From Phallusia mammillata (Eukaryota), in contig OZ281495.1 of assembly GCA_965637545.1 (NCBI GenBank), positions 2,728,001 to 2,792,000 of the forward strand: a stretch of 64,000 nt of DNA. The letters run 5' to 3'. Made by a program: the position numbers and the translations under genes. Positions 1 through 50,770 of the stretch are shown piece after piece; the first letter of the stretch is position 1; each line of letters begins with the position of its first letter. The notes below the pieces were generated by a model, which worked only from the letters and a program-made list of their open reading frames with translations, ran no database searches and was not told the origin of the DNA.

Positions 1-288
1 AGGAAATACAGGATTGGATACAAACTTTGGTCGGTGAAGACAAAGAAATCGCAGAGCAACTCCAACTACTGATGAAGCGATGCTGGGATCAAGATCCAAC
101 AAAACGTCCTACAATGACTGAAATAAAAGAAGAATTGAAAACGCGTTTGGATAAGCAACAAACTACCAAGCTACTTTCTCAAGTTTTGACAACTCTGACT
201 CAAATGGATTTAGACGAGCAACCGCAAGTCAGCGAAAGTCGACGCGTCCCTCTTCACCATTTTTCACCCCGGTCCGGAAGTTTTCACG
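1..288 (+). CDS. 3' end of RIPK-like kinase exon (left-arm copy of unit 1)
   Basis: LMKRCWDQDPTKRPTM (kinase subdomain XI); phase-1 donor CAC G|gtaaat at 289. Confidence 0.9.
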
Positions 289-518
289 GTAAATTAATCG
301 GTCAATACATATAAATTTATTATAATAAGAAGTAACCCCGAGTAGAAGCAGATTTCCTTGCCCGAGACGCTTTGGAACTGGTAGTCAAAACAATTAAGTT
401 GAGAGATAATGTGACAATGTGATCTGTTATATTTCTTGGCGGTTCAGAAGTTACACAGTAACATAAAAAAATCTAAAGGTATTAAGTCGTTTTGTCATAT
501 CACCCATCTATATTTCAG

Positions 519-3500
519 TGCCCTTCACATCGGGTGGAACCGAAGGACGGTTAAGCGAAACAGCGGAGGGCGTACAAGAGTTGCCTTCTTCTCAGCAAGG
601 TAAAAAATCCTCCCAGAGTAAAAAAAAAATAGTAGGATTTAACAATGTCAATTGTTTTTTCGTATAAAACCTTCAGCATCCCCGTACTAGAACTAGGGTG
701 AGATGCTCAGTTTATGAAGCCACCTGACTACTCGCGAGGCCGCACTAACAATTTTGTGTAATGTAATCCCAAGGTTTGGTTCTTACAACGGCAAAACTAT
801 ACAGAGCGCACTTTTAGAGCTAAATGTCCGCAGGTCTTCCATTTCCGATCTGATCAATCAAAACTATTTTTCATTGATTAAACTTTGTTTTATTTGTCGT
901 AACATTGCTGTTTGTTCGATCGTTTTTTAAAACTTTTGAGATTTAAAAAAGGTCAATATAAAGCCGTAACAGCCCTCTGCCAGTTTGTTGTAAAGTCAAT
1001 ATTCGTCTTTTGGCAACCGAACGTCAAACAATTTCACTCGGTGCACAGACGATGTTTCAAATAAATCTTGGTTTTATTTCTCTCGGAAAGCAAGGCAAAT
1101 GTCTTCACTAAATAAAGATATCTATAAGCAATCAACTTTCAGGCCCCTCTACAACAAGTGCGGCCATAAAAAAGACAATTAAACCGATATATGAAGCACA
1201 AGTGGTACGGTCACCATCTTCTTCTCAACAAGGGGAAACTCCTACATCCAGGAAACCGCAGCAACTAGGTATGGGGTGGACAAAACGATAATGGAAATTC
1301 CGATAATTTAGAAAATCATTATAAATTTACCAGTTTTTGTTTTACCTACTTTAAGTCGCGGAACACTTGGCGCATATTAAAATCAATGTCACACTCAACC
1401 AATTGATAACGGACCCACGCAATTATATTTTTAATATTTCACGACGAATCTGTTTGTTACACAAAAATAAATGATGTAAATCACGAAGAAACATTCAAAC
1501 TGGTGATAGCGGAGAATTACTTTTATGAAAGAAAAGCTATTTCTGCCATTTGTGTTAAACTTTGAAAATCACTGCCTTAAACGACAGCAAACATGCGTTG
1601 CCAGTATGGTGGAAAGTCAATATTGGTTTAGCGGCAACTCGTATAACTTTACGAGGAAATAGGTCCGAAAATAAGTTATATATTTATTAAAATATGTATA
1701 GGCGAAAACAAAAATCATTGTAGGTAACACAATAGCACCAATACTTAACCAACAATGATTTATTGTCATTAGCATCAGCCGGCACCTCACAGAAAAACAA
1801 ACAATTGCCTTCTTATGAACAAGAAGAAACTCCAACTAGCAGCAATGCACAGCAATCGGGTATGAGATACGTTGGCTCGTAGGAACTTCTAGTTATTGAT
1901 AAACGTATTGTTACCAAGAATACTTATAGGCAGTGAGAAAAAAAACACATTTCACCCATTTGTTTGTTCAGACGCCATTAGAAACGATGACGAAAAATTC
2001 AACCCGTCCGTACAAAAGTTGATCGCCCGTTTCAACAGCATATCACCACAGCAACCTGCAGGTAACCAATTATGGACACGTAGAATCAAATAATTGGGAC
2101 TTGTGTGCTTGTTTTGAAGCTTATGACCTGACTAACGCAAATGTGTGTGAACGACCGCGATTATGCCTGAGCCGGTTTAAAGTTATTTCTCGTAACATCA
2201 ATAAACTTAGCTTTAGTTAAGCAACAACCTGACAGCTAAGCAGTTAGGATGCACGTAATTTCGTAACTGGGATCAACCCTCAAGCGTTTATTCAGATCAG
2301 TGATAACGGCGTAGTTATAACTAAATCACTAGGATCAGTCTTTTAAACGCGGTATACCAAACCAGCCGATCATTCCAAATGGCAAGGGCTCTGATGGGAC
2401 TCGAACCCACGACAGAGTCTTTCTTGGACTTGCAGGCAACAGTGCTTGTTTCGATATTTGACGGGCTTACCGCTGAACTTGTGAAGTTCAGTTGGTTCAT
2501 ATTATTCCACAAAGAGTCCAGATATCCAAAAAATAATAAATGAAGTAAATCGCGAACATTCAAACAGGTGATAGTGATTACTTTTCTAAAAAAGTTTTTC
2601 TGGTCCATTGTGTTAGAAGTACCAGGATATGAGATGCACATGTTACCTGGACCAAAAACGCTTTAAAGAACCTGCTAATCTAATATATTCTATGCCCCCT
2701 TCCAATTCTGTAAACGAAGCCCTGCGATTCTTCCTAACTTTTCCATAGGCTAATAAACATTGTATCAAGTTAAATATACTCTATATATAAAAAATAACCA
2801 CGACGTAAAGTCAAATCGATATAGCAAATCGACCTTTTACTAAACGTCCCTCAAAACACTGCTGTCTGCCGACCGGAGGTTGACCAATCATAGGCCAAAA
2901 CAATTTATGAAGGTTACTGGGCACATCCGAGAGCGACAACTATTTATGCGAAAAATCCAGCGAGGTAATGCGAAACAAAGCACGCAACTAGAACGAACAG
3001 TGAAATAAATCAAATAAGACAATATTACGTGAAAATCTGCAATTGAGAGAAATAAATAAATATGTAGCGCTGAAAAGGTAACATAAGGAAAACACATTGG
3101 AAGGTTACCTACAGAAAACCGTCCTACTTCCAGCAGCTCATCACCACAGCAACCTACAGGTAAACCAATCACAGATAAAGTCGTGCCCTACGCGTTTGAC
3201 ATGAAAACATAAGTTATTTACCAGGCAATTAATGTTTCGTCCTCATTTTAGTTCTGTGGGGTTTGACAGTGCCTTAAACATTATTTGCAGCCCGACAATG
3301 CATTGCTGTTGCAGTCGGAAAAGCGATATTGTGTTAAAAATATAATGATTGACGCGATTTTAGTAGGTACTAAGCAGAAGAAAAGCGTTAACGCTTTACA
3401 TGTGTGTTTGTAAAAGACTCGGTTTCGGACGAATCGCAAAAAATTATTCGGCCGAAACCGAATCTTTGCAAAAGTAGCCGATTCGGTTGAATAAATTCGA

Positions 3501-6500
3501 CAAACCGAATATTCGGTACATCTCCAGTTAACACGTTACAGAGCGCTAAAAAGTGTCGGGTACAGTTAGTGGATAGTGGCATTATGCATTGTATCTACAC
3601 TGTATTATGAGGTGTTATGTGACAGGCTCACAGGAAAGTGAATGTGGCGCAGAGTGGGAATCTCACGACTGAAAGGGGTCAGGGGGCTCGATGGAGGAAC
3701 CAGTCGCGAGGCTCTACAATCTAACCACCTGTGATTTATTGTTTTTGATAAAACTCGACTTAACATCATGTCTTATTGCGTAGTAACAAACTTTAACGTT
3801 TTATCATGAGCTAATATTCAAAAAAAGACAAAAAAATTAAATTTTCTAAAAAAGGTTTTTACCTCCGAAGTCAGTTTGTTTTGCCATCGTTTTCCACAAT
3901 TGTTGGTGCCCCAACCCGTTTGGCCCATAGAAGCTTGTTCATGTCCACTAGATATTGGCTGCACATGGTTCCAAAATCAATATCCTCATTATGATTCAAA
4001 ACTCTACAAACAAAAATTATAATTTAAAAATTTGGTCTTGACATTTGCTATTGATCGAGATGTTAAAATGGAATTCGTGAAAAATCTGTCTTACTGTAAA
4101 TCCCAAAAAACATTTTTTGTTAAACTATTTTGTTTTACTTGGAACATATTTCAACAACGTACTTTTCGTTTATCGTTTAATGGCAAATCGACTTAAAAAT
4201 ATTCGTCTTTATTGTGGTCAGATGTGGAGGTGTTACGACGAATGGAAGTTACTTATTCCTACGAACCAGGAAACGCCGATGAACTGCAATTGAAAGTTGG
4301 TGACATAATCGACGTGTATAATGATGTGGGTACCTATGGTTTAGTATTTATTGGATCCCAATGCTACATTTTCACTACAAAAATAAACAACACATAAAAA
4401 ATGTGAAATACCATGTTATAATGTACAACGTTACACCTATTTTGTAATAAAGCGATTAATGAGTCCACAAGACCAGTTTCTACAAAAACGGTTACACTAT
4501 GGGGGAACAATTATTTCTGATTGATGTAACATTGTTTGTCTTTTTTTACCAGTCAAGTGATTGGTCAAGTATTCTAAACAATGTTAATTTAAAAAATGTT
4601 TACCAGTTTCATGAACATGGGTAAATTCTTGGGTAAATTGGTAGAAAATAAAACTTTAGATAGGTTATAAAGCTTTTGTGTCAAACTTTTTCTGCTTGCA
4701 ATTACACAGGAGGAGGAAGGTTGGGCCAGAGGTCGATGCAACGGAAAGGAAGGAGTTTTTCCAACAAACTACGCCACCACTCTTGAGGAACTTGACTCAC
4801 CAACAACATCAGCAGCATCTCAAAACACTGAAGAATCAGCTCAAGAAGAAGCAAAAAAGGCAAGTAATTTACTGAAGTTAAATCCTTATGTTGGATTGTA
4901 GATTGGAAACCTACAACGGGCTTTTTATCTTAAAACTGTAATCTTGTTTGGAAGTTTATTAACTGTGCCATTTACATTGGGTCCTATAGTTTCAAATTCT
5001 GTTTAAAAGCCTGATTGTTTCTGTAGGAAGAAAGCTTCACCGTGTCCTTATAAATATTGCTGTTTATTAAATATTTTCGTTCAATCCTATATAGCTGTGG
5101 ACTTTTTTAGAGGTTAAACCAGATAGCGCAGTGTGAAGTGTTTTAAGGTCAGTCGTGGACACCGGTTAGATTACATTTGTTCCATTGCATGTAATGCTTA
5201 CTTATAAAGTGAACTTAAAAACAGATGTGGGAAAACTTTCGTTGTAATATATATTTTTATACCCAGATATTGGAAATCAAGGAAGTGAAAAATACAGGTA
5301 AGTGTAAGAGATGTATGGATAGAAATGAACGAAAGCGTTCATGAGAAAACGAATAATTTCCAAACGAGTAGAATGTTGGTGTACAGTTTTCATATCGTCG
5401 CCTGATTGACATTTTGATATAACACAACTTGACAACTATTTGATTTTCTTACTTTCATAAACTACAAAGCCTTTCACCAGGATAAACGAGGCCCTTATCA
5501 ATTTTTAAGTGCGACGAACCTTCCTACAGCATTATTCCATTTCTGATGAAAATTTCAAACTTTAATGTTTTGCTGAAAGTAGATTAGACGAGAAAATAGC
5601 AACAACATAAACTAGTCGATTTATATCTATTGGTTTCATTCCAGGGCTTACCGAACTTTAACTCGCCTTTATAATTTGTAAACGTTTTTAAACATACAGT
5701 AACCCGTCAGCGTAGGTTGGCCTTTTCGCTGTTATGAAGCTTACGCAGCCAACTCTCAACTGCACTTGCAACTGTTTAATATGTGGAGTCTTACGCACTA
5801 TATTTTAGTGGAAAGTTAATATTTGACAACTCAAACAAAATCAATCCGGCACTTCTTTAGCAAATAACCTATGTTTATAAGTAATATTCTTCTGTTACAA
5901 AACGAAACAATACAGTATAAAAGTGTCTAGTAGTAAACCACCAATATTTTAGTGCCCTCCACATCAGGTGACACCGAGGAACGATCAACCGAACCAACAG
6001 ATGGCGCAAAAGAGCATGTACAGTCATTTCCTCAACAAGGGGAGACTTCCACCAGCAGCAGCCCGCAGCAACTGGGTATAACATGCATTGACTGGTTGTA
6101 ACTTCTATCAATCGTATACCAATGCTGAAAGTTACATTGTTGAAAGTTTTCACCCTTTTTTGAAGAACAATTACAAAATCAAAAATAAATTTGATTTTGT
6201 TCAGATCCCACCAGACGTGGTTCCAAAGGACTGTTTACGACGGTACGAAAGTTTATCTCACGTTTGAACAGAAAATCACCACAACCACCAACAGGTAAAC
6301 TAATCACATTATGCACAAAATGATTGCAAATCGTGTGTTGACATTTAGCGCTTGACTTCTCAAATCACGATTTTTCGTTTTCATACTTAAGCCTCAACCA
6401 GTTCTGCAATAAAAATCCCGGTTTTTGCATCTGACATAGTAATATAAAGTTGTTTTCGTATTCAGCCTATAGTTAAAAATCGTATTTCAACAGTTTGGCA

Positions 6501-6858
6501 AAATATTACGTCATATCACACATTGCTAAGCTGCAAATCATTTTGTGAAAACAAATTCAAGTCGTTAAAAAGTAGCCAATAAATTAAGCTCACAAATAGT
6601 TATGTGGCCATAATTACACTGGGTAACTGGACAGTTTGTAACAAAACGTTTCTGTGTCTTTGTCACGTTGATAAAATAACTAAACACGACTGTAGGATAA
6701 ATTAAAGTCTATTTGTGAAACCACTTATATTTTAGTGCCTTCCACTTTAAACAACACCGAGGAACGATCAACCGAACCAACAGAGGGCGCCAATGAAGCA
6801 GAACAAACTTCTATCCAACAAGGGGAAATCCCCACCTCCAGCAACCAGCAACAACCAG
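519..6858 (+). CDS. Left-arm copy of unit 1 linker and SH3 exons (519-599, 1143-1268, 1773-1859, 1972-2061, 3115-3159, 4222-4325, 4710-4859, 5267-5297, 5953-6075, 6205-6294, 6736-6858); no TPR exon on this strand
   Basis: Mirror of the unit 1 exons; AG/GT (one GC) boundaries and open frames read by hand. Confidence 0.7.
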
Positions 6859-7877
6859 GTATGAGATACATTGAACCGTTACATTGCGTAGTTATGCCGG
6901 TAACGTTTGTTATAAATTTTTGCATTGAACCTTTAACTTCTGTTAAATAATGCCAGGGTGCGGAACTTTTTTGTTCGCGAGCAATTTGTATTCCACAATA
7001 ACTCGTTTATCACAGAGGTCGAATAGAAATTGAGTTTTAATCATGTTACCCCTATTTAAGCCTTAAACCGTTATAATTGGGGACCCCACTTTTTCCCTCA
7101 AGAAGTCGATGATTCCACATGTCAAGACGAGCAAAAACGTTCTTTTTCTAAGGTTGGCAATGAAATGTAAGCCACAAGCGTCCGCTGCCAGTTTGCTGGA
7201 AAGGCAATATTTGTGTAGCGACAACCAACACCTCAAAATATTTCACATAGTAAAAGGGCAGTTTGTCACAAAATCGTTGGTGTTAGTTATTACTTTAGAA
7301 ATAATTTAATACTATCTGGACAAAGAATTTCAATCTTGTAAGTTAATTTGACTTATGGTACACAATTCAACCTAGGTGAAACCACAGACAGCGGATGTTT
7401 TGACACATTATGTTCAATTAAATTGTGGTTTTAGGTTTGTTTGTAGCTACTTAAAAATTCTCGAGATGTGATTACCATGGCAACATTAGAAAATTGGCCA
7501 TAAGGTTTAAAAACTTCCCACCACACAGAAAACTCGCCACGCTAGTATATGAACCATTTAACTGTTTCCGCTACCTATCGTCCCAACAAACCGCGGAAAT
7601 CAAAAGCATGTCTTATTACCCACCAGAATTTGACAGACATTTAAAGGCCACCCAAAGTTTACCTTCCCCTCTTTTTTTATTTATGGGCTTTTGCATCGAC
7701 CTCTAGTGGCTAAGAAAAAAACAGGTTTTAAAAATCTTCCACTCACATCATCGATAATCACCAGCACAGCATTTCACGACCCGTTTCTAGCCGGATGGTT
7801 TTTCCACGACCCGTTTCTAGCCGGATGGTTTTAAGCCAATTTGGTTTCAGTGGCTAAATCCAAGCCGACTATGTTTA

Positions 7878-8247
7878 TGTCACCTTCAAACAATCCCATA
7901 ACCATTCACCATGGCTGTCATGTTTTGATTTTTATGTTGAATCTGTCCACATGTTTGCATATCTTTAACTTAAACACTTCTTTTGGGACCAAACCCAAAC
8001 ATTACTCTTTATCTTTAGTTGGTACTTGGTTGTCTACTTGCAAAAATACACAACTGAAATGAAATCAGTTGTGATTCGTGCTTCAAGCTTTGAACCAAGG
8101 GTCAACCATATATAAAGTGTAATGGTTTGGGTTGTGCTAAAAAAGAAGTGATAAAGTTAAAGATATGCAAACATGTGGACAGATTCAACATAAAAATCAA
8201 AACATGACAGCCATGGTGAATGGTTATGGGATTTTGTAAAGGTGACA
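7878..8247. mobile_element. Fold-back/MITE-like element, ~135-bp imperfect inverted arms (mirror copy 14644-15013)
   Basis: 7878-8011 is the reverse complement of 8111-8247 (outer ~90 bp near-perfect); no TSD identified. Confidence 0.7.
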
Positions 8248-8774
8248 CACAAAGTTGAAATTACTAGTGACTTATATACAGGCTCTATGTAACATACAAG
8301 CAAACACTGACATAAGTAACAACATTGTTTTTGTTTTATTTAAAATAATGCTGGTAATCACAGATGTTAATGTAATTGTTAAAGTACATTAAAATTCATG
8401 ACAAACACTAAAAACTTGTGTAGTAATAAAAAGGTGAAATGAAAATGACATGTTGAAACAATGGTATACATAAAAACAACAACAACAAAATTTGGTTATA
8501 TGTGTAAGAATTGGTGGAGGATGTGCACACAAAAAATGGCATATCAGACGCTTATGACAAATTGAGTAAATCACCTGCATTTGTAGTTTACTAAACATTG
8601 TGTGATGTACTAAGCTGGGCAACATACAGGGATATGCATAAAAATGGGTATTCCAAATAAAACATGTGATATAAAGCAACTGTACAAAAGTTCTACAATC
8701 CATACAAAGGACTTTCCATGTCAAAACACTTTCTCTAAAGAAAATTTCTTTTGCTTCTCTTTTTTCCTGTGTTT

Positions 8775-8974
8775 NNNNNNNNNNNNNNNNNNNNNNNNNN
8801 NNNNNNNNNNNNNNNNNNNNNNNNNNNNNNNNNNNNNNNNNNNNNNNNNNNNNNNNNNNNNNNNNNNNNNNNNNNNNNNNNNNNNNNNNNNNNNNNNNNN
8901 NNNNNNNNNNNNNNNNNNNNNNNNNNNNNNNNNNNNNNNNNNNNNNNNNNNNNNNNNNNNNNNNNNNNNNNNNN
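8775..8974. other. Scaffold gap (200 N)
   Basis: Run of exactly 200 N. Confidence 1.
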
Positions 8975-10017: not shown

Positions 10018-10778
10018 TCACTTGGTCAACTTCGCTTTGCTGTTTTGCAATTTCCTTTCACTTATTGCAATCAATTTTTCTCGTTGTTCCTCAGTTATAT
10101 CCTCCGCTGTTTTGTAAACTTCGATCGCTTTTGTGTAACATTCGATTGCTTCTTTGATTCGTGAAGTTGTCTCACAAACAGCACCAAGATTGTTCAACAA
10201 GTGACCGTAGATGTAATACTTTGAACTTTCATTCCCGAACTTTGTTTCCATAAGTTCAAGTCCAAGTTTTATTGTTGTTTCACTCGATGCAAAATCACCG
10301 ATGTGATGTTGACTCACTTCAATGTGATGCAAACACCGAACCTCCTTTTTACATCGAATTTTTTCATTTATTTGAAGGTCACGGATTTGCTGAACCATGT
10401 CACGCATCAGTGGGATCACGTGATCGCGCACGATTTCTATGTTTCTCGACTCCGAAGATGAATCGGAATTTTTCATCAAATGTTCGATTGTTTTTCGAAT
10501 TTCCATCGCACAACCCACTACACTTTTCGCTACAGCGGAGTCGGGATTTTTGTTTGCATAGAAATCTGCGGCAACGCTAAACAACAAAATGGCTTCCAAA
10601 TATTCGCCGTCATCTCTAAATTTTGTGGCTTTTTCTTTCAGGTTTTCTGCAGTGACCCCTGGTTGACCAGTGATTGACCTTGAAAGTTGTTGTTTTGTCG
10701 TTTTTGCTTCGTCATATTTTTTTGTTTTTAATAAATCAACATAATTATCAATACGTTGATTGAATTCGTCAGTTTGAT
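10018..10778 (-). CDS. Unit 1 terminal exon, TPR-like helical domain
   Basis: Acceptor ttctctgcag|AT, phase 1; 59 open codons upstream of the ORF-track start; TPR motif YGHLLNNLGAVC...EAIECYTKAIEV. Confidence 0.88.
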
Positions 10779-13700: not shown

Positions 13701-16700
13701 TTAGCCAGTTGTTTTGTTATTTGTAGGATGTGGATTAACTGCAAAGGACCGACTTGTATGATGAATATAAAAGTGAGTTTGCAAAGGTGGCTTTCTGTTT
13801 GAGAAGAAAGTGTTTTGACACGTGCATTTTTCTGGTATGTATGTTCATTTAACCTAGTTGTTCTGTGATACATATCTAGGATAACGGTAATTGGTGATTC
13901 TGTTCATTTTTTAGATTTATTGGAGATTATTTCCAAATATTACAGTCTATACAGCTCCAAATTGAAACACAAATATTATCAATTAATTCTAGGATAATAA
14001 AGTACAAAATGCAAGCCAGTTCTAAAGAGTGTCCCTTGTCATTGTAAAAATATTCAGTCACAATCTTCCAACTTTACTTTTTAATAAAAAACTGAAACTG
14101 TAATTTGTTTTATTTTAAACACAGGAAAAAAGAGAAGCAAAAGAAATTTTCTTTAGAGAAAGTGTTTTGACATGGAAAGTCCTTTGTATGGATTGTAGAA
14201 CTTTTGTACAGTTGCTTTATATCACATGTTTTATTTGGAATACCCATTTTTATGCATATCCCTGTATGTTGCCCAGCTTAGTACATCACACAATGTTTAG
14301 TAAACTACAAATGCAGGTGATTTACTCAATTTGTCATAAGCGTCTGATATGCCATTTTTTGTGTGCACATCCTCCACCAATTCTTACACATATAACCAAA
14401 TTTTGTTGTTGTTGTTTTTATGTATACCATTGTTTCAACATGTCATTTTCATTTCACCTTTTTATTACTACACAAGTTTTTAGTGTTTGTCATGAATTTT
14501 AATGTACTTTAACAATTACATTAACATCTGTGATTACCAGCATTATTTTAAATAAAACAAAAACAATGTTGTTACTTATGTCAGTGTTTGCTTGTATGTT
14601 ACATAGAGCCTGTATATAAGTCACTAGTAATTTCAACTTTGTGTGTCACCTTTACAAAATCCCATAACCATTCACCATGGCTGTCATGTTTTGATTTTTA
14701 TGTTGAATCTGTCCACATGTTTGCATATCTTTAACTTTATCACTTCTTTTTTAGCACAACCCAAACCATTACACTTTATATATGGTTGACCCTTGGTTCA
14801 AAGCTTGAAGCACGAATCACAACTGATTTCATTTCAGTTGTGTATTTTTGCAAGTAGACAACCAAGTACCAACTAAAGATAAAGAGTAATGTTTGGGTTT
14901 GGTCCCAAAAGAAGTGTTTAAGTTAAAGATATGCAAACATGTGGACAGATTCAACATAAAAATCAAAACATGACAGCCATGGTGAATGGTTATGGGATTG
15001 TTTGAAGGTGACATAAACATAGTCGGCTTGGATTTAGCCACTGAAACCAAATTGGCTTAAAACCATCCGGCTAGAAACGGGTCGTGGAAAAACCATCCGG
15101 CTAGAAACGGGTCGTGAAATGCTGTGCTGGTGATTATCGATGATGTGAGTGGAAGATTTTTAAAACCTGTTTTTTTCTTAGCCACTAGAGGTCGATGCAA
15201 AAGCCCATAAATAAAAAAAGAGGGGAAGGTAAACTTTGGGTGGCCTTTAAATGTCTGTCAAATTCTGGTGGGTAATAAGACATGCTTTTGATTTCCGCGG
15301 TTTGTTGGGACGATAGGTAGCGGAAACAGTTAAATGGTTCATATACTAGCGTGGCGAGTTTTCTGTGTGGTGGGAAGTTTTTAAACCTTATGGCCAATTT
15401 TCTAATGTTGCCATGGTAATCACATCTCGAGAATTTTTAAGTAGCTACAAACAAACCTAAAACCACAATTTAATTGAACATAATGTGTCAAAACATCCGC
15501 TGTCTGTGGTTTCACCTAGGTTGAATTGTGTACCATAAGTCAAATTAACTTACAAGATTGAAATTCTTTGTCCAGATAGTATTAAATTATTTCTAAAGTA
15601 ATAACTAACACCAACGATTTTGTGACAAACTGCCCTTTTACTATGTGAAATATTTTGAGGTGTTGGTTGTCGCTACACAAATATTGCCTTTCCAGCAAAC
15701 TGGCAGCGGACGCTTGTGGCTTACATTTCATTGCCAACCTTAGAAAAAGAACGTTTTTGCTCGTCTTGACATGTGGAATCATCGACTTCTTGAGGGAAAA
15801 AGTGGGGTCCCCAATTATAACGGTTTAAGGCTTAAATAGGGGTAACATGATTAAAACTCAATTTCTATTCGACCTCTGTGATAAACGAGTTATTGTGGAA
15901 TACAAATTGCTCGCGAACAAAAAAGTTCCGCACCCTGGCATTATTTAACAGAAGTTAAAGGTTCAATGCAAAAATTTATAACAAACGTTACCGGCATAAC
16001 TACGCAATGTAACGGTTCAATGTATCTCATACCTGGTTGTTGCTGGTTGCTGGAGGTGGGGATTTCCCCTTGTTGGATAGAAGTTTGTTCTGCTTCATTG
16101 GCGCCCTCTGTTGGTTCGGTTGATCGTTCCTCGGTGTTGTTTAAAGTGGAAGGCACTAAAATATAAGTGGTTTCACAAATAGACTTTAATTTATCCTACA
16201 GTCGTGTTTAGTTATTTTATCAACGTGACAAAGACACAGAAACGTTTTGTTACAAACTGTCCAGTTACCCAGTGTAATTATGGCCACATAACTATTTGTG
16301 AGCTTAATTTATTGGCTACTTTTTAACGACTTGAATTTGTTTTCACAAAATGATTTGCAGCTTAGCAATGTGTGATATGACGTAATATTTTGCCAAACTG
16401 TTGAAATACGATTTTTAACTATAGGCTGAATACGAAAACAACTTTATATTACTATGTCAGATGCAAAAACCGGGATTTTTATTGCAGAACTGGTTGAGGC
16501 TTAAGTATGAAAACGAAAAATCGTGATTTGAGAAGTCAAGCGCTAAATGTCAACACACGATTTGCAATCATTTTGTGCATAATGTGATTAGTTTACCTGT
16601 TGGTGGTTGTGGTGATTTTCTGTTCAAACGTGAGATAAACTTTCGTACCGTCGTAAACAGTCCTTTGGAACCACGTCTGGTGGGATCTGAACAAAATCAA

Positions 16701-19700
16701 ATTTATTTTTGATTTTGTAATTGTTCTTCAAAAAAGGGTGAAAACTTTCAACAATGTAACTTTCAGCATTGGTATACGATTGATAGAAGTTACAACCAGT
16801 CAATGCATGTTATACCCAGTTGCTGCGGGCTGCTGCTGGTGGAAGTCTCCCCTTGTTGAGGAAATGACTGTACATGCTCTTTTGCGCCATCTGTTGGTTC
16901 GGTTGATCGTTCCTCGGTGTCACCTGATGTGGAGGGCACTAAAATATTGGTGGTTTACTACTAGACACTTTTATACTGTATTGTTTCGTTTTGTAACAGA
17001 AGAATATTACTTATAAACATAGGTTATTTGCTAAAGAAGTGCCGGATTGATTTTGTTTGAGTTGTCAAATATTAACTTTCCACTAAAATATAGTGCGTAA
17101 GACTCCACATATTAAACAGTTGCAAGTGCAGTTGAGAGTTGGCTGCGTAAGCTTCATAACAGCGAAAAGGCCAACCTACGCTGACGGGTTACTGTATGTT
17201 TAAAAACGTTTACAAATTATAAAGGCGAGTTAAAGTTCGGTAAGCCCTGGAATGAAACCAATAGATATAAATCGACTAGTTTATGTTGTTGCTATTTTCT
17301 CGTCTAATCTACTTTCAGCAAAACATTAAAGTTTGAAATTTTCATCAGAAATGGAATAATGCTGTAGGAAGGTTCGTCGCACTTAAAAATTGATAAGGGC
17401 CTCGTTTATCCTGGTGAAAGGCTTTGTAGTTTATGAAAGTAAGAAAATCAAATAGTTGTCAAGTTGTGTTATATCAAAATGTCAATCAGGCGACGATATG
17501 AAAACTGTACACCAACATTCTACTCGTTTGGAAATTATTCGTTTTCTCATGAACGCTTTCGTTCATTTCTATCCATACATCTCTTACACTTACCTGTATT
17601 TTTCACTTCCTTGATTTCCAATATCTGGGTATAAAAATATATATTACAACGAAAGTTTTCCCACATCTGTTTTTAAGTTCACTTTATAAGTAAGCATTAC
17701 ATGCAATGGAACAAATGTAATCTAACCGGTGTCCACGACTGACCTTAAAACACTTCACACTGCGCTATCTGGTTTAACCTCTAAAAAAGTCCACAGCTAT
17801 ATAGGATTGAACGAAAATATTTAATAAACAGCAATATTTATAAGGACACGGTGAAGCTTTCTTCCTACAGAAACAATCAGGCTTTTAAACAGAATTTGAA
17901 ACTATAGGACCCAATGTAAATGGCACAGTTAATAAACTTCCAAACAAGATTACAGTTTTAAGATAAAAAGCCCGTTGTAGGTTTCCAATCTACAATCCAA
18001 CATAAGGATTTAACTTCAGTAAATTACTTGCCTTTTTTGCTTCTTCTTGAGCTGATTCTTCAGTGTTTTGAGATGCTGCTGATGTTGTTGGTGAGTCAAG
18101 TTCCTCAAGAGTGGTGGCGTAGTTTGTTGGAAAAACTCCTTCCTTTCCGTTGCATCGACCTCTGGCCCAACCTTCCTCCTCCTGTGTAATTGCAAGCAGA
18201 AAAAGTTTGACACAAAAGCTTTATAACCTATCTAAAGTTTTATTTTCTACCAATTTACCCAAGAATTTACCCATGTTCATGAAACTGGTAAACATTTTTT
18301 AAATTAACATTGTTTAGAATACTTGACCAATCACTTGACTGGTAAAAAAAGACAAACAATGTTACATCAATCAGAAATAATTGTTCCCCCATAGTGTAAC
18401 CGTTTTTGTAGAAACTGGTCTTGTGGACTCATTAATCGCTTTATTACAAAATAGGTGTAACGTTGTACATTATAACATGGTATTTCACATTTTTTATGTG
18501 TTGTTTATTTTTGTAGTGAAAATGTAGCATTGGGATCCAATAAATACTAAACCATAGGTACCCACATCATTATACACGTCGATTATGTCACCAACTTTCA
18601 ATTGCAGTTCATCGGCGTTTCCTGGTTCGTAGGAATAAGTAACTTCCATTCGTCGTAACACCTCCACATCTGACCACAATAAAGACGAATATTTTTAAGT
18701 CGATTTGCCATTAAACGATAAACGAAAAGTACGTTGTTGAAATATGTTCCAAGTAAAACAAAATAGTTTAACAAAAAATGTTTTTTGGGATTTACAGTAA
18801 GACAGATTTTTCACGAATTCCATTTTAACATCTCGATCAATAGCAAATGTCAAGACCAAATTTTTAAATTATAATTTTTGTTTGTAGAGTTTTGAATCAT
18901 AATGAGGATATTGATTTTGGAACCATGTGCAGCCAATATCTAGTGGACATGAACAAGCTTCTATGGGCCAAACGGGTTGGGGCACCAACAATTGTGGAAA
19001 ACGATGGCAAAACAAACTGACTTCGGAGGTAAAAACCTTTTTTAGAAAATTTAATTTTTTTGTCTTTTTTTGAATATTAGCTCATGATAAAACGTTAAAG
19101 TTTGTTACTACGCAATAAGACATGATGTTAAGTCGAGTTTTATCAAAAACAATAAATCACAGGTGGTTAGATTGTAGAGCCTCGCGACTGGTTCCTCCAT
19201 CGAGCCCCCTGACCCCTTTCAGTCGTGAGATTCCCACTCTGCGCCACATTCACTTTCCTGTGAGCCTGTCACATAACACCTCATAATACAGTGTAGATAC
19301 AATGCATAATGCCACTATCCACTAACTGTACCCGACACTTTTTAGCGCTCTGTAACGTGTTAACTGGAGATGTACCGAATATTCGGTTTGTCGAATTTAT
19401 TCAACCGAATCGGCTACTTTTGCAAAGATTCGGTTTCGGCCGAATAATTTTTTGCGATTCGTCCGAAACCGAGTCTTTTACAAACACACATGTAAAGCGT
19501 TAACGCTTTTCTTCTGCTTAGTACCTACTAAAATCGCGTCAATCATTATATTTTTAACACAATATCGCTTTTCCGACTGCAACAGCAATGCATTGTCGGG
19601 CTGCAAATAATGTTTAAGGCACTGTCAAACCCCACAGAACTAAAATGAGGACGAAACATTAATTGCCTGGTAAATAACTTATGTTTTCATGTCAAACGCG

Positions 19701-22700
19701 TAGGGCACGACTTTATCTGTGATTGGTTTACCTGTAGGTTGCTGTGGTGATGAGCTGCTGGAAGTAGGACGGTTTTCTGTAGGTAACCTTCCAATGTGTT
19801 TTCCTTATGTTACCTTTTCAGCGCTACATATTTATTTATTTCTCTCAATTGCAGATTTTCACGTAATATTGTCTTATTTGATTTATTTCACTGTTCGTTC
19901 TAGTTGCGTGCTTTGTTTCGCATTACCTCGCTGGATTTTTCGCATAAATAGTTGTCGCTCTCGGATGTGCCCAGTAACCTTCATAAATTGTTTTGGCCTA
20001 TGATTGGTCAACCTCCGGTCGGCAGACAGCAGTGTTTTGAGGGACGTTTAGTAAAAGGTCGATTTGCTATATCGATTTGACTTTACGTCGTGGTTATTTT
20101 TTATATATAGAGTATATTTAACTTGATACAATGTTTATTAGCCTATGGAAAAGTTAGGAAGAATCGCAGGGCTTCGTTTACAGAATTGGAAGGGGGCATA
20201 GAATATATTAGATTAGCAGGTTCTTTAAAGCGTTTTTGGTCCAGGTAACATGTGCATCTCATATCCTGGTACTTCTAACACAATGGACCAGAAAAACTTT
20301 TTTAGAAAAGTAATCACTATCACCTGTTTGAATGTTCGCGATTTACTTCATTTATTATTTTTTGGATATCTGGACTCTTTGTGGAATAATATGAACCAAC
20401 TGAACTTCACAAGTTCAGCGGTAAGCCCGTCAAATATCGAAACAAGCACTGTTGCCTGCAAGTCCAAGAAAGACTCTGTCGTGGGTTCGAGTCCCATCAG
20501 AGCCCTTGCCATTTGGAATGATCGGCTGGTTTGGTATACCGCGTTTAAAAGACTGATCCTAGTGATTTAGTTATAACTACGCCGTTATCACTGATCTGAA
20601 TAAACGCTTGAGGGTTGATCCCAGTTACGAAATTACGTGCATCCTAACTGCTTAGCTGTCAGGTTGTTGCTTAACTAAAGCTAAGTTTATTGATGTTACG
20701 AGAAATAACTTTAAACCGGCTCAGGCATAATCGCGGTCGTTCACACACATTTGCGTTAGTCAGGTCATAAGCTTCAAAACAAGCACACAAGTCCCAATTA
20801 TTTGATTCTACGTGTCCATAATTGGTTACCTGCAGGTTGCTGTGGTGATATGCTGTTGAAACGGGCGATCAACTTTTGTACGGACGGGTTGAATTTTTCG
20901 TCATCGTTTCTAATGGCGTCTGAACAAACAAATGGGTGAAATGTGTTTTTTTTCTCACTGCCTATAAGTATTCTTGGTAACAATACGTTTATCAATAACT
21001 AGAAGTTCCTACGAGCCAACGTATCTCATACCCGATTGCTGTGCATTGCTGCTAGTTGGAGTTTCTTCTTGTTCATAAGAAGGCAATTGTTTGTTTTTCT
21101 GTGAGGTGCCGGCTGATGCTAATGACAATAAATCATTGTTGGTTAAGTATTGGTGCTATTGTGTTACCTACAATGATTTTTGTTTTCGCCTATACATATT
21201 TTAATAAATATATAACTTATTTTCGGACCTATTTCCTCGTAAAGTTATACGAGTTGCCGCTAAACCAATATTGACTTTCCACCATACTGGCAACGCATGT
21301 TTGCTGTCGTTTAAGGCAGTGATTTTCAAAGTTTAACACAAATGGCAGAAATAGCTTTTCTTTCATAAAAGTAATTCTCCGCTATCACCACTTTGAATGT
21401 TTCTTCGTGATTTACATCATTTATTTTTGTGTAACAAACAGATTCGTCGTGAAATATTAAAAATATAATTGCGTGGGTCCGTTATCAATTGGTTGAGTGT
21501 GACATTGATTTTAATATGCGCCAAGTGTTCCGCGACTTAAAGTAGGTAAAACAAAAACTGGTAAATTTATAATGATTTTCTAAATTATCGGAATTTCCAT
21601 TATCGTTTTGTCCACCCCATACCTAGTTGCTGCGGTTTCCTGGATGTAGGAGTTTCCCCTTGTTGAGAAGAAGATGGTGACCGTACCACTTGTGCTTCAT
21701 ATATCGGTTTAATTGTCTTTTTTATGGCCGCACTTGTTGTAGAGGGGCCTGAAAGTTGATTGCTTATAGATATCTTTATTTAGTGAAGACATTTGCCTTG
21801 CTTTCCGAGAGAAATAAAACCAAGATTTATTTGAAACATCGTCTGTGCACCGAGTGAAATTGTTTGACGTTCGGTTGCCAAAAGACGAATATTGACTTTA
21901 CAACAAACTGGCAGAGGGCTGTTACGGCTTTATATTGACCTTTTTTAAATCTCAAAAGTTTTAAAAAACGATCGAACAAACAGCAATGTTACGACAAATA
22001 AAACAAAGTTTAATCAATGAAAAATAGTTTTGATTGATCAGATCGGAAATGGAAGACCTGCGGACATTTAGCTCTAAAAGTGCGCTCTGTATAGTTTTGC
22101 CGTTGTAAGAACCAAACCTTGGGATTACATTACACAAAATTGTTAGTGCGGCCTCGCGAGTAGTCAGGTGGCTTCATAAACTGAGCATCTCACCCTAGTT
22201 CTAGTACGGGGATGCTGAAGGTTTTATACGAAAAAACAATTGACATTGTTAAATCCTACTATTTTTTTTTTACTCTGGGAGGATTTTTTACCTTGCTGAG
22301 AAGAAGGCAACTCTTGTACGCCCTCCGCTGTTTCGCTTAACCGTCCTTCGGTTCCACCCGATGTGAAGGGCACTGAAATATAGATGGGTGATATGACAAA
22401 ACGACTTAATACCTTTAGATTTTTTTATGTTACTGTGTAACTTCTGAACCGCCAAGAAATATAACAGATCACATTGTCACATTATCTCTCAACTTAATTG
22501 TTTTGACTACCAGTTCCAAAGCGTCTCGGGCAAGGAAATCTGCTTCTACTCGGGGTTACTTCTTATTATAATAAATTTATATGTATTGACCGATTAATTT
22601 ACCGTGAAAACTTCCGGACCGGGGTGAAAAATGGTGAAGAGGGACGCGTCGACTTTCGCTGACTTGCGGTTGCTCGTCTAAATCCATTTGAGTCAGAGTT

Positions 22701-25138
22701 GTCAAAACTTGAGAAAGTAGCTTGGTAGTTTGTTGCTTATCCAAACGCGTTTTCAATTCTTCTTTTATTTCAGTCATTGTAGGACGTTTTGTTGGATCTT
22801 GATCCCAGCATCGCTTCATCAGTAGTTGGAGTTGCTCTGCGATTTCTTTGTCTTCACCGACCAAAGTTTGTATCCAATCCTGTATTTCCTGGCAGTCTGG
22901 TCTTTTTCCTTTCTTGATTTCCTCTAATAACTCTCTTCGCTCTTCCTGAGTCAGACGTGGATACGGAGCTTTACGATTTAGTGCCCAGTGGATGATCATT
23001 GAAAATGCGTAAACATCATGTTGCTTCCTAGGCTTCATGCTGAGGTCCTTCAGTTTTTCAGGAGCTGTGTAATAGGGAGTGAATTGAGGCCTTTCTTTCT
23101 TGGTTCGTGCCAAAGGATTCACATTTGCCGAAATACTGTAAGTTGCCAGTTCGGCCCCGCCAAAATCGATTATTTTGCAATGGAGCTCTTTAGAAAACAT
23201 AACATTTTCGGGTTTTAAGTCCTGATGAATTAAACGTTTATCAGGTAAATTGTGACAGAAAGCCATTGCTGATGCTACTTCGTATAAAATACGAACACGC
23301 AAAGCAAGGCCCAGTTCTTTTGATGTATCCTGTAGTAGCTCTTTGAGATTCCCGCCTTTGTAATATGCCATCACAATTCCTATTGCGAAAGTCCATTTGA
23401 CATAGCCAAAAACCCGAACGACATTTTCATGATCTGCTTTCTGCAAGTGTTCCATTTCTTCTTTGATTCTAAAAAGAGAGTTTTTTTTTCAGCTGCATGT
23501 TACGTTTTGTGCATGTAATAACGCAAAGCAAAGATCTCGGTAGGACAGGTGAGGTGGTATGTCCCCTCAACAAAATGATTGAAAACAATTTATCAAACGT
23601 CACACAACCCGCATTCCTCGCTTTTTAATCTTCGGTTTTTAGCAATGATTAAAAATGTCGCATCTCGCACCACACATCAGGAAATCAAGCAGGCCAACCA
23701 AGATTAGTAGTCACGATGGCTGGCGCGCTTTGCTGGTTAATTCATCTAAGATTGCGCAGTAGTTTGTCATTATCGTGTAGTCCATGGAATTAATGCCGCT
23801 GGACGAAGCTTTTGAGGTATAACTAGTTTTGTAAGTCCACACATATACCAGATACACCAGCACAATATATAAAATTAGCAAATGTTTTCAAAATTGCCAT
23901 TTTTTAAAATTTAATTTCGATTTGTTACCTCATTATCATATTTTACAAATTGTTGTGAAGTCATCAACACAAAATTAATCTTAAATAGTACGTTTCTTCC
24001 ATATTTGCGATAGATTTGCACCGCTCTATATAACAAATCGTATAACTTACGTTTTTTCAAGCCGCGCCTTTTCTTGGGTTCCACCAGATACTTCAAACAC
24101 TTTGATGGCAACTTCTTGCTTTAACCCATTGTGGTATCCGAATATAACATCCCCGAAGCCTCCTGAACCGGCCACGAATTTGTCAAGGTTACATGTGATG
24201 TCACCACAATCCAATTCCCGTAACTGTGACACAGAAAGATTATGTTTTTACCCCTGATGTCCAACGTATATTTCATTGAGGTCCAACCAAGCCATACAAC
24301 TAACTTAACCAATGTTATTCAAAACTTTGTTCAACCGGTTTGCAAACGAAAAGTTTTTGATTCAAATCCCGTTGGGCTTTAGTAATTGCTGAGTAATTTA
24401 AAACCCAGTTTTTTACATTGCAAGATTTGTTTTTGAAACAAATTCTCTGCTACAAATTTAGGTTTATCAGACAAGTCAGAGCGAGTTGAGTAAAACATAG
24501 TTATCGACTAGTTTCAGAGTGTTAAAATGGTTTATATAGAAAAAGAAAGCGGATTATGTCAGTAAGTCCTCCTAAACTTAACTCTTAGCTAAACATTATC
24601 AGTCACTAGAAAGCACAAAAGGGCCTTAGAGCTACTAACACAGGACCTTACATCACAGGCCTACTAATTTCCAGTAAAGTGCGCACTCAAAAATAATTCC
24701 GGCAGAGAGCGCACTCAAAAATCTTAAATGCACTTTGTAAAAAAAATGCTGACGGTTAGGGCTATGGGGGTTGGTCTGAGGTTTCACAATAACACTGAAA
24801 TCAGCCCAAAAACCCAGTTTATGTTAAATTCATTCATTTAACCCTACCCCAGACGCAATTGTAATTTGAATAACTGCGCTCTTTTCACCATCGATCGGTA
24901 TTTAAGAAACTTTTTGTGGTGTGAGTTTCTGTGTTAGTAGATCCTCCCAAAATAGGAAGGAACGAAAATACTTTAGGATTAAAAGAAAAATTTAAAACAA
25001 ATTTATTTGAATCCCGGTAGTCTAATTTGAAACTATACTTTTTCATACGGTGGACAAATAAAACCTGTTTAGTGTAATGAACAAACAAACAAAAGAAAAA
25101 AATTTGTAGAAGTTGCTTACCTCTTTCGGCGAAGTCAT
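10018..25138 (-). CDS. Unit 1 gene model: RIPK-like kinase - linker repeats - SH3 - linker repeats - TPR-like domain (~955 aa, 15 exons)
   Basis: Exons 25121-25138, 24051-24223, 22603-23468, 22292-22372, 21623-21748, 21032-21118, 20830-20919, 19732-19776, 18566-18669, 18032-18181, 17594-17624, 16816-16938, 16597-16686, 16033-16155, 10018-10778 sum to 2868 nt = 956 codons in one open frame with compatible phases. Confidence 0.72.
11958..12260. repeat. CCCGAA/GGCCCG-rich interspersed repeat (MITE-like)
   Basis: Clustered cccgaa/ggcccg motifs at 11970-12040 and 12190-12255. Confidence 0.35.
12337..15120. mobile_element. Decayed DNA-transposon-like material in the last intron of unit 1
   Basis: Starts near CACTAGAAAAAA; AGCC/GGCT-rich repeats at 12350-12720 and 15030-15120 (30-bp tandem pair); exon-like fragment NFCTVALYHMFYLEYP at 14199-14246. 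Far end not found. Confidence 0.3.
13270..13661. mobile_element. MULE-like MITE with ~120-bp TIRs and 8-bp TSD
   Basis: TIRs GGGTGACACTAAAACGCTGAATGGGCGGGA...; aaattttt duplicated at 13262-13269 and 13662-13669. Confidence 0.8.
16033..16155 (-). CDS. Unit 1 type-A linker exon (VPSTLNNTEERSTEP...QQP)
   Basis: tttag|TG ... G|gtatga, 123 nt, phase 1-1. Confidence 0.8.
16597..16686 (-). CDS. Unit 1 type-B linker exon (DPTRRGSKGLFTTVRKFISRLNRKSPQPPT)
   Basis: ttcag|AT ... G|gtaaac, 90 nt, phase 1-1. Confidence 0.8.
16816..16938 (-). CDS. Unit 1 type-A linker exon (VPSTSGDTEERSTEP...PQQL)
   Basis: tttag|TG ... G|gtataa, 123 nt, phase 1-1. Confidence 0.8.
17594..17624 (-). CDS. Unit 1 31-nt micro-exon (ILEIKEVKNT), phase 0 to 1
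   Basis: acccag|ATA ... ACA G|gtaagt; restores phase after the SH3 exon. Confidence 0.55.
18032..18181 (-). CDS. SH3 domain, second exon (EEEGWARGRCNGKEGVFPTNY...)
   Basis: acacag|GAG; SH3 core GW..G...G.FP.NY; ends AAG|gcaagt (GC donor) or 4 nt later at a GT. Confidence 0.85.
18566..18669 (-). CDS. SH3 domain, first exon (DVEVLRRMEVTYSYEPGNADELQLKVGDIIDVYND)
   Basis: gtcag|AT ... GAT|gtgggt; SH3 RT-loop motif Y.Y.P.N.DEL.L..GD.I. Confidence 0.88.
19368..19710. mobile_element. Truncated copy of a CCGAATATTCGG-type MITE (fuller copy at 57547-58006; mirror 3181-3523)
   Basis: Aligns by eye to 57547-57690 and 57880-57925. Confidence 0.65.
19732..19776 (-). CDS. Unit 1 short linker exon (ENRPTSSSSSPQQPT)
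   Basis: cctacag|AA ... G|gtaaac, 45 nt, phase 1-1; 3' half matches type-B exons. Confidence 0.6.
20830..20919 (-). CDS. Unit 1 type-B linker exon (DAIRNDDEKFNPSVQKLIARFNSISPQQPA)
   Basis: gttcag|AC ... G|gtaacc, 90 nt, phase 1-1. Confidence 0.82.
21032..21118 (-). CDS. Unit 1 A-related linker exon (ASAGTSQKNKQLPSYEQEETPTSSNAQQS)
   Basis: cattag|CA ... G|gtatga, 87 nt, phase 1-1. Confidence 0.65.
21623..21748 (-). CDS. Unit 1 A-related linker exon (GPSTTSAAIKK...SRKPQQL)
   Basis: tttcag|GC ... G|gtatgg, 126 nt, phase 1-1. Confidence 0.7.
22292..22372 (-). CDS. Unit 1 shortened type-A linker exon (VPFTSGGTEGRLSE...SQQ)
   Basis: tttcag|TG ... G|gtaaaa, 81 nt; the paralogous downstream donor is lost (gattta). 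Confidence 0.65.
22603..23468 (-). CDS. Unit 1 main kinase exon, RIPK-like TKL kinase
   Basis: EEMEHL (alphaC), IHQDLKPEN, IIDFG, YTAPE, DVYAFS, LMKRCW..DP.KRP; ttttag|A phase 2, G|gtaaat phase 1. Confidence 0.93.
24051..24223 (-). CDS. Unit 1 kinase N-lobe exon
   Basis: cacag|TTA; GSGGFG and VAIK; AC|gtaagt; 173 nt, as in units 2 and 4. Confidence 0.92.
25121..25138 (-). CDS. Unit 1 start exon (MTSPKE)
   Basis: ATG ACT TCG CCG AAA GAG|gtaagc, phase 0 fits the next exon; paralog MTSANE at 46657-46674. Confidence 0.7.
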
Positions 25139-49424: not shown

Positions 49425-50770
49425 GTCTAAAAAGAAAAGAACGATAAAAACACATAAAAGCTAAAACGGTAAAATACTAAGCAAGTAACAGCCGCAAATT
49501 CAGACCAAAGCGATGAAAAACAATGGAGAAGGTCTGCAAATAACACCAAAGCTGACTGACTGCTAAAATGGGGGGTGGCAATAAAGGGGCCGGTAGCAAA
49601 CGAAAAAACTAACACATGTAAGAAGGTGATGACGTCATTAAGTGATAAGGGGTCGTGCGTACAAGGTGTCAGAAAGCTGATTATTTTACCTGTGGCAAAA
49701 TCATTGGTTGTATGTTTATGGTCGCCTTTAGGTCGTTCAACCATTTGTCCTCACAAATATCTAACCGGCTCATAGGCGGCTCTTCAACAAATATTACCGA
49801 AAACCAACTTGATATGTCCGGTTTGTTTGCTCTTGCTGTCTGTTACGTCCCCTGTTCGCCACGTTGATCTGTGTGCGTTCCATCTTGTGCTCAAACGGTT
49901 TTTCGTTTGCCCCACGTATTGTTCTTTGCATGTGGTGCAGGTGGCCACGTATATGCCATAATTTTTGCATGTCAGTTGTTGCCTTAGAGGAATAGAGTGG
50001 TTGGAAGGGGTGGTGACATAGGAAACGGAAGGAACCATAGCTTTGAACCCCTTTCTACAACCACACAATGCGCATTTGCCGCATGGTCGTGAATATCCAC
50101 CAGCCTGTTGACTCGACATATCCAGTACGTGCTTTTTTGATAGTATTGCGCCCAGTGTTTTGGGACGTTTGAACGTAATGCAAGCCCCGGGTTTCAGCGC
50201 TTTTTCTTTGCCTGTCAGGTGAAGGATGCGTGGAAAATTTGTAGCCCAGACAACTCTTTTGTGTGGCTCCTGCGGCATAGTATTAGGTCCAAACCGTTGT
50301 TTCCAGGTGGAAGCTAGTGTGATTATGTCCGAAGTCATTTTCTTAGGAAAGCAAGAAAGTATACATTTTGGCTGCAACCTCTTAAGGCTGTGGATGAAGT
50401 CGGCATCATTTTCATTCAGGCGGCGCATGCGTACTGCTTCCGAAAAAACAATTGATTTGAATAGGCAAGGAGGATGGTGCGAAAATCCATTTAAAAAACG
50501 ACGGGATACAGCCGTAGGTTTAACGTAATCTTTAGTTGTAAAACCTGTTGCGGTGGTGTCGGACGTAACATGGAGAACGTCGAGGAACTCCAATTCTTTT
50601 CCAGGTGCAGCTGTGCATATCTTTCGAAAGGTTAGGGACAGGCCAAAACTGGCAAAAGTTTTGCTATGTAATGGTTTTACAATTCTCATGCTTGTGGTTC
50701 TCAACCAGGCGAGGGGATTCCCCACTAGAGAGGAATTTTGTAATTTGTAGAGGGGGAATTTGTGTTACAA
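49385..50770 (-). mobile_element. Internally deleted Penelope-like retroelement (RT thumb + GIY-YIG endonuclease)
   Basis: LEFLDV, YVKPT, SHHP, CGKCALC linker, GIYVATC...QYVGQT; C-terminus VIFVEEPP...EDKWL...INIQPMILPQVK* (stop 49681-49683) in a shifted frame; RT catalytic core absent. Confidence 0.9.

Follow-up and report, generated by a model that had tools for sequence, protein, structure and literature searches.

An SH3 cassette within a kinase-TPR gene array

A stretch of 64,000 nucleotides (nt) from the sea squirt Phallusia mammillata (assembly GCA_965637545.1, contig OZ281495.1, positions 2,728,001 to 2,792,000; hereafter the window, with positions counted from its first letter) contains two short exons that together encode an SH3 domain, set within a gene otherwise made of protein kinase, linker, and TPR exons. 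The window DNA is about 36% G+C, and on its minus strand paralogous genes follow one another in tandem. Each begins with a protein kinase split over two exons (Pkinase, E 4e-38), continues with short linker exons in which Ser, Thr, Pro, and Gln are abundant, and closes with an exon of about 253 codons that matches TPR. The SH3-bearing gene, unit 1 (24223 down to 10018), follows this family pattern on a single strand, its linker mini-exons and its last, TPR-encoding exon all being in phase 1 (Table 1); the junction between kinase exons 1 and 2 was seen in presumed-RNA contigs of a relative about 93% identical. Its kinase-to-TPR interval, which holds the SH3 exons, measures 11.8 kb, compared to 2-4 kb in units 2 and 4. 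An earlier, preliminary description of the window had held that the SH3 is absent from units 2-4, and tblastn at E<=10 indeed found none there. Pkinase, SH3, and TPR were the only domains found in unit 1, which had no NB-ARC/NACHT or LRR.

When joined, the two SH3 exons encode 86 amino acids that form a complete SH3 domain, matching PF00018 (SH3_1) at 52.5 bits (E 3.6e-14, cut-off 22.9) over profile positions 3-48 of 48, SH3_9 at 45.5 bits, and SH3_2 at 43.5 bits; either half, unjoined, scored just 19-24 bits as an SH3. Among solved structures, the best single-domain matches were the second SH3 domain (SH3-B) of SH3KBP1/CIN85 (61 bits) and then CD2AP SH3-B (57 bits), with GRB2 ranked above CIN85 only because two of its domains sum. 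The preliminary description had named this likeness to the second SH3 of CIN85, and had placed a two-exon SH3 between linker modules; both exons do lie there on the minus strand, with the quoted peptides exact. The span it gave, 18032-18669, matches the exon positions except at its lower end, as 18032 marks the old donor (GC now), and an in-frame exon must end at 18028. As inspected by eye in the alignment, the ligand-contact residues (YSYEP, GW, and FPTNY in the window copy) were kept across all captured copies described below: the two Tyr of the ALYDY-type motif, the first Trp after the n-Src loop, and the Pro and Tyr/Phe of FPxNY/F in the 3-10 helix. Unit 1 is nonetheless not a member of the CD2AP/CIN85 adaptor family, for it carries a single SH3, between a protein kinase domain and a TPR exon, and neither SH3-A (sought at E<=10) nor SH3-C left a trace in the window.

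Table 1. Unit 1, its SH3 cassette, and the inverted duplication, in window positions (a slash within a motif marks the exon-intron boundary)
Feature	Position	Strand	Remarks
Kinase exon 1, unit 1	24051..24223	-	glycine loop and VAIK lysine; donor AC/gtaagt, phase 2
Kinase exon 2, unit 1	22603..23468	-	phase-1 donor CACG/gtaaat
Linker exon	22274..22372	-	99 nt, phase 1-1
Linker exon	21623..21748	-	126 nt, phase 1-1
Linker exon	21032..21118	-	87 nt, phase 1-1
Linker exon	20830..20919	-	90 nt, phase 1-1; ends ...SPQQPA
Candidate linker micro-exon	19732..19776	-	45 nt, phase 1-1; nearest exon upstream of the SH3
SH3 exon 1	18566..18669	-	104 nt; phase-1 acceptor cag/AT; phase-0 donor GAT/gtgggt; N-terminal SH3 half including the RT loop
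Intron splitting the SH3	18182..18565	-	384 nt; phase 0; same codon position as in SH3-B of the donor gene
SH3 exon 2	18028..18181	-	154 nt; acceptor cacag/GAG; C-terminal SH3 half and acidic Ser/Thr tail
Ancestral donor position of SH3 exon 2	18032/18031	-	reads GC now
Proposed donor of SH3 exon 2	18028/18027	-	A/gtaatt, phase 1
Linker exon	16816..16938	-	123 nt, phase 1-1; first conserved exon downstream of the SH3
Linker exon	16033..16155	-	123 nt, phase 1-1
Terminal TPR exon, unit 1	10018..10778	-	phase-1 acceptor ctgcag/AT; ends at stop codon
Left arm of inverted duplication	1..8774	.	99.989% identical to 14117-22890; extends past window start; ends at N gap
Right-arm part matching left arm	14117..22890	.	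contains SH3 cassette, linker exons, and end of kinase exon
Assembly gap	8775..8974	.	200 N; inner edge of left arm
Mirror copy of whole SH3 cassette	4222..4863 (exons 4222-4325, 4710-4863)	+	inside inverted duplicate

The donor gene and the spread of the cassette

A six-frame search of the whole assembly with the window cassette (identities are given below as exon 1 / exon 2 against it) identified a locus at about 25.47 Mb of C6 (82% / 81%), with no kinase or TPR within 20 kb. The gene at this locus has, in order and on one strand, a single-exon SH3, an SH3 split in the same way as the cassette, a third split SH3, and a proline-rich exon. The best matches of its first SH3 were SH3-A of CIN85 and of CD2AP, and those of its third were SH3D21, CIN85 SH3-C, and CD2AP SH3-C; from its domains, it is the CD2AP/SH3KBP1-type gene of P. 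mammillata. The SH3-B of this gene is about 81% identical to the window cassette, and the two have in common the phase-1 acceptor, a phase-0 intron after ...VYND, the end of exon 2 after ...KK, and the Trp-Ala pair (WA in place of WW). Even the 3' ends of both upstream introns were alignable between cassette and C6, local blastn extending 19-28 nt into the introns; only such local flanks were used, as the global alignment of a 384-nt cassette intron to a 1000-nt donor intron inflates identity. That the cassette is a CIN85/CD2AP-type SH3-B by descent, taken from the host's own gene, is thus well supported by sequence comparison.

Exon capture, as put forward in the preliminary description, is borne out by each comparison with the host's own CD2AP/CIN85 gene: the donor was found on C6 at the above identity, intron position and phase are identical, the acceptor-side bases can be aligned, and the end of exon 2 is homologous. 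The change of the WW pair to WA, also listed there, did not follow the capture: the donor gene already has Trp-Ala, a state therefore ancestral in this animal. Because the intron was retained, retroposition is excluded as the route, and the capture took place at the DNA level.

The preliminary description also had the SH3 captured into only one paralog, a reading rejected by the genome-wide cassette copies and by a kinase tree. In addition to the second copy in the window itself, at 4222-4863 on the plus strand, cassettes were found at C2:3.186 Mb and on contig C28 (100% to the window cassette), at C2:3.111 Mb (100% / 98%), at C2:2.992 and 3.235 Mb (85% / 90%), on contig C300 (85% / 88%), at C2:3.459 Mb (73% / 75%), and at C2:3.714 and 3.750 Mb (68% / 58-62%). 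The window kinase, SH3, and TPR exons were mapped onto 20 kb around each of these (16 kb for C28, and 4 kb, the whole contig, for C300). At six loci (C28 and C2:3.186, 3.111, 3.235, 3.459, and 3.750 Mb), kinase exon 1, kinase exon 2, SH3 exon 1, SH3 exon 2, and the TPR exon follow one another in this sequence along a single strand. At C2:3.714 Mb, the kinase is followed by the SH3, and the sole TPR match in the examined stretch is partial and upstream of the kinase; at C2:2.992 Mb, kinase and SH3 are present and the TPR position falls beyond the examined stretch; C300 is a 4-kb fragment with the cassette alone.

These copies differ greatly in age. The C28 and 3.186-Mb copies agree with unit 1 at 99.99% of positions over 14.7 kb, and those at 2.992, 3.235, and 3.111 Mb are 96-97% identical to it, introns included; from these identities, all five appear to be young duplicates or, in part, assembly redundancy. 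The older lineages, by synonymous divergence (dS) of the kinase from the window type, are the 3.459-Mb type (0.31) and the 3.714/3.750-Mb type (0.57). In a maximum-likelihood tree of kinase exon 2, the 8 SH3-bearing rows split from 3 SH3-less rows (units 2 and 4 and a neighbour of the 3.186-Mb copy) with support of 100/99, a small sample rooted only at its midpoint; this topology fits a single old capture in the ancestor of a subfamily. The subfamily that the cassette marks comprises at least four lineages distinct in sequence, and, given at least 133 TPR-exon matches in the genome, SH3 bearers are a small minority of the family.

The 3.714- and 3.750-Mb genes hold, in addition, two SH3-A-type exons that flank SH3-B and are 85% and 79% identical to the donor SH3-A. 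The original insert was therefore probably larger than SH3-B, containing more of the adaptor gene. A lost SH3-A exon that might have left its trace in the window was also considered, and none was found at E<=10.

Within the window, the mirror copy of the cassette belongs to an inverted duplication (Table 1). Genome-wide positions of the TPR exon form mirrored pairs around one centre, C2:2739444 (about 11444 in the window), that reach at least 88 kb to each side (C2:2.649-2.833 Mb), and the duplication is a giant palindrome of very recent origin or else a scaffolding duplicate. The kinase-SH3 copy of the left arm has no TPR exon on its own strand before the gap.

Other observations concern the copies and their surroundings. 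C2:3225100-3245099 is a mosaic paralog: its TPR end (window 14922-9700) is 99.8% identical to unit 1, and its kinase/SH3 part, about 96.8% identical to the window, has the same kinase exon 2 and SH3 peptide as the 2.992-Mb copy, as either recent gene conversion, unequal crossing-over, or an assembly chimera might produce. Three weak SH3 matches (C2:2611485, 2858947, and 2956991; 38% identity and a 59-amino-acid open frame each) lie inside the kinase-TPR cluster and may represent another kind of captured SH3. Directly upstream of the cassette, at window 19351-19776, is a repeat with a depth of up to about 360 in contigs presumed to be RNA, where neighbouring exons have zero; in contig C300, a 99.5% copy (L049:3575-4000) is found beyond the opposite end of the cassette, and the repeat is probably mobile or else an abundantly transcribed element of another kind. 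Between units 2 and 3, a 326-amino-acid open frame unlike the kinase-TPR genes (49787-50764, minus strand) resembles, by eye, part of a retroelement protein.

Splice phase and constraint in the captured exons

The exons surrounding the cassette are uniform in phase. Kinase exon 2 ends and the TPR exon starts in phase 1, and all seven linker exons between the two are phase 1-1, so that the cassette, which also enters in phase 1, is readable in frame among them. Its exit, however, was not so in the donor: the donor gene and the 3.714-Mb type alike end exon 2 at AAG/GTGA in phase 0, and the cassettes, of 278 and 269 nt, leave a remainder of 2 modulo 3. In the window and 3.459-Mb types, the same site reads AAG GCAA GTAATT, the old GT having become GC, with a GT 4 nt downstream. 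Use of the donor at 18028/18027 gives a cassette of 104 + 154 = 258 nt in phase 1-1, and the gene model then has one uninterrupted frame between the kinase and the TPR stop, whether the SH3 is included or skipped; if splicing instead takes the GC donor at 18032, the cassette is not symmetric. The 3.714/3.750-Mb genes, within C2:3704600-3724599 and C2:3740200-3760199, have SH3-A-, SH3-B-, and second SH3-A-type exons in a row, and among these just the second SH3-A (186 nt) is phase 1-1; in the 3.714-Mb type, the parental donor of this exon was lost, and a new GT yields the 186-nt length. We infer that two independent donor shifts to the recipient phase are the strongest sequence-level sign of use in the kinase-TPR frame.

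Rates of change set the SH3 apart from the kinase to which it would be joined. For the SH3 core (58 codons), the ratio of nonsynonymous to synonymous rates (dN/dS) was 0.10 between the window type and the donor gene, 0.26-0.30 between the window type and the 2.992-Mb and C300 types, 0.6-0.7 between the window type and the 3.459-Mb and 3.714-Mb types, and 1.06 between the latter two. At the same loci, kinase exon 2 had values of 0.09-0.20 and the TPR exon 0.5-1.0; the SH3 thus evolves like the fast TPR part and unlike the kinase. Open frames and AG/GT splice sites are present in all lineages. When neutral substitution was simulated at the divergence of the cassette intron, about 27% to each of the old lineages, about 0.3% of trials left both the 86-codon frame and all four splice dinucleotides intact; once indels at the intron rate were included, this was true of 0 of 20,000 trials. 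So rare a neutral outcome indicates that the cassette is maintained as a spliced coding unit; the constraint upon it, judged from the above ratios, would be relaxed or diversifying.

Part of this variation is highly localized. The window and 2.992-Mb types differ by 9 substitutions within 32 nt in the RT loop, the part of an SH3 on which specificity depends, with flanks little changed, and the RT-loop residues read GNA in the window, EIF in the 2.992-Mb copy, ENF, EDF, or KDF in the other copies, and TNE in the donor. Such a cluster could reflect selection on ligand specificity or a short conversion tract.

A probable docking domain borrowed by a kinase, and its alternatives

The history that best accounts for these observations would begin with a genomic piece of the CD2AP/SH3KBP1-type gene, the SH3-B intron included, inserting into the linker region of an ancestral RIPK-like kinase-linker-TPR gene. 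The resulting SH3-bearing gene would then have multiplied on C2, with unit 1 of the window as one member and units 2-4 in an SH3-less sister group. In the window lineage, the parental donor was lost (GT to GC) and the GT 4 nt downstream would have taken over, turning a phase 1-0 cassette into a symmetric 1-1 cassette of 258 nt that could be spliced in frame between phase-1 linker exons or skipped. The predicted product has a kinase, a disordered linker, the SH3, another disordered linker, and the TPR. We think it rather likely that the captured SH3 is a docking module used in frame in the kinase-TPR gene; most likely, it would tether the kinase to proline-rich partners of the kind bound by CD2AP/CIN85 SH3 domains. 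An internal (intramolecular) ligand is ruled out for the atypical PxxxPR type, which CD2AP/CIN85-type SH3 domains bind, as the motif is absent from the modelled unit-1 protein.

A number of observations weigh against such use. AAG/GCAAGT at 18032 is a good GC-type donor by the usual pattern of GC-AG introns, and, were it in use, the frame would be broken, with a stop about 45 codons on. The C300 copy is without the downstream GT, the SH3-B of the 3.714/3.750-Mb genes keeps the out-of-phase parental phase-0 donor, and the SH3-B tail of the 3.750-Mb copy carries an in-frame TAA. A dN/dS of up to 1.06 among captured copies means that constraint is weak or that the domain is diversifying. Four small runs of presumed-RNA contigs compared to 17700-23600 gave no coverage of SH3 or linker exons, which is not evidence of silence; they do cover the kinase exon (from a relative about 93% identical) and the repeat at about 19360-19700. 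None of the best 150 public representatives matching the TPR exon had an SH3, and 1 of these 150 had a kinase piece. Among public proteins, the 86-amino-acid SH3 query matched only CD2AP-like fragments of other species, at 47-54% identity, and the kinase exon query matched nothing at E<=1e-40 in the query's length window. Lastly, several of the counted copies are 99.99% identical and beside N gaps, and so may be assembly duplicates.

Much of this would be expected if the cassette were a relic, that is, an adaptor-gene fragment in a long intron, never or rarely present in mRNA and carried along by young segmental duplications. The RNA and protein searches, the dN/dS near 1 in one pair, the stop codon in the 3.750-Mb tail, and the GT lost in C300 all agree with it; many copies, moreover, are young whole-locus duplicates, 96-100% identical including introns, and exons and intron are conserved to much the same extent between the window and 2.992-Mb types (92% and 93%). 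We nevertheless consider it unlikely, as both exons are open and the splice sites intact in the 3.459- and 3.714-Mb types despite an intron identity of 72-75%, against a neutral expectation of about 0.003, and as no copy has lost the ligand-contact residues that define an SH3. In-frame use, in addition, requires exactly such a donor shift back to phase 1.

Quite doubtful, too, is that the SH3 belongs to a separate nested transcript, or that the GC donor leads to an early-ending kinase-linker-SH3 protein with no TPR. The fit of the 18032 site to GC donors, the end of that frame soon afterwards, and the left-arm copy (if real), with kinase and SH3 and no same-strand TPR before the gap, all speak for one or the other. 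Against this, SH3 exon 1, with its phase-1 entry, lacks any start codon that would leave the domain intact and so needs an exon upstream, and the only same-strand neighbours are kinase and linker exons. The order and strand of kinase, SH3, and TPR are, moreover, constant at most loci where all three could be reached.

In vertebrates, viral proteins bind or target CD2AP and SH3KBP1 according to two reports (PMC5977219, PMC11560026), which is compatible with the idea of an integrated decoy but does not support it for the sea squirt. Kinase-TPR proteins would then be intracellular immune sensors whose SH3 mimics a pathogen-targeted CD2AP/CIN85, with effector binding activating the kinase, and the family would be an animal counterpart of plant integrated decoys: RIPK-like sensor kinases with a CD2AP/CIN85 SH3 as bait and an RT loop diversifying between copies. 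The SH3 is an outsider to the family, has a host adaptor gene as its source, and is confined to a minority of the TPR-exon copies; the family is large, tandemly arrayed, and fast evolving in its TPR part; and differences between SH3 copies concentrate in the RT loop. Both the decoy itself and the wider counterpart appear improbable to us, however, given that an immune role, an effector, and a pathogen are all without support in the present data, that the RT-loop cluster is equally compatible with a short gene-conversion tract, that the receptor is not an NLR and has no known paired helper gene, and that the captured RT loops have diverged from the parental TNE and are therefore poorer mimics of the parent.

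The SH3-bearing gene has partial parallels elsewhere. The window cassette resembles CD2AP/SH3KBP1 (CIN85) SH3-B in its best structure match and, through SH3-B of the animal's own C6 gene, in intron position, phase, and the WA pair; unlike unit 1, those adaptors have three N-terminal SH3 domains, a proline-rich region, a C-terminal coiled coil, and no catalytic domain, and the window type differs from their SH3-B in its RT loop (TNE to GNA) and in the altered exit phase. If the donor at 18028/18027 is used, then, as in classical phase 1-1 exon shuffling, a domain-sized, phase-1-bounded cassette stands in a phase-1 intron context where it can be read or skipped. Here, however, the donor cassette was asymmetric (1-0), with symmetry apparently reached after capture by a 4-nt donor shift, and the kinase-TPR case is cytoplasmic, whereas the classical cases involve mainly extracellular modules. 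Plant NLRs with integrated domains (NLR-IDs) likewise present a host-derived foreign domain in a subset of a large tandem family with a fast-evolving recognition-type domain, but unit 1 has no NB-ARC or LRR, no known effector, and no paired helper, making the likeness one of analogy and not of membership. In the MLK/MAP3K9-11 and Src families, an SH3 precedes the kinase and regulates it within the same molecule, and in plant BSK kinases a C-terminal TPR follows the kinase; these share with unit 1 the pairing of a protein kinase with a peptide-docking SH3 or a C-terminal TPR. We know of no kinase with the order RIPK-like kinase, SH3, TPR, and no described counterpart appeared in the public-protein matches or literature examined, where a search for the kinase-TPR family or for CD2AP/CIN85 exon shuffling returned no paper. 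Among public proteins, P0002 (506 amino acids) begins with a Cys-rich region, has a hydrophobic stretch that resembles a membrane span, and carries at its C terminus a domain 67% identical to the window TPR exon; receptor-like proteins, too, therefore end in this TPR module.

The event is one of exon shuffling, or domain capture, that gave rise to a kinase-SH3-TPR architecture for which no described counterpart was found. As animal domain captures go, it is unusually traceable: a single genome contains not only the donor gene, retained intron, and recipient family but also older copies that have the parental splice phase and copies adjusted to that of the recipient, so that the steps making a borrowed exon pair readable in its new gene are directly visible. 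The large sea-squirt kinase family into which it came looks like an innate-immune or self/non-self system. If the SH3 is indeed spliced into the kinase message, its ligands would point to the recruitment targets of the kinase or to partners that it guards.

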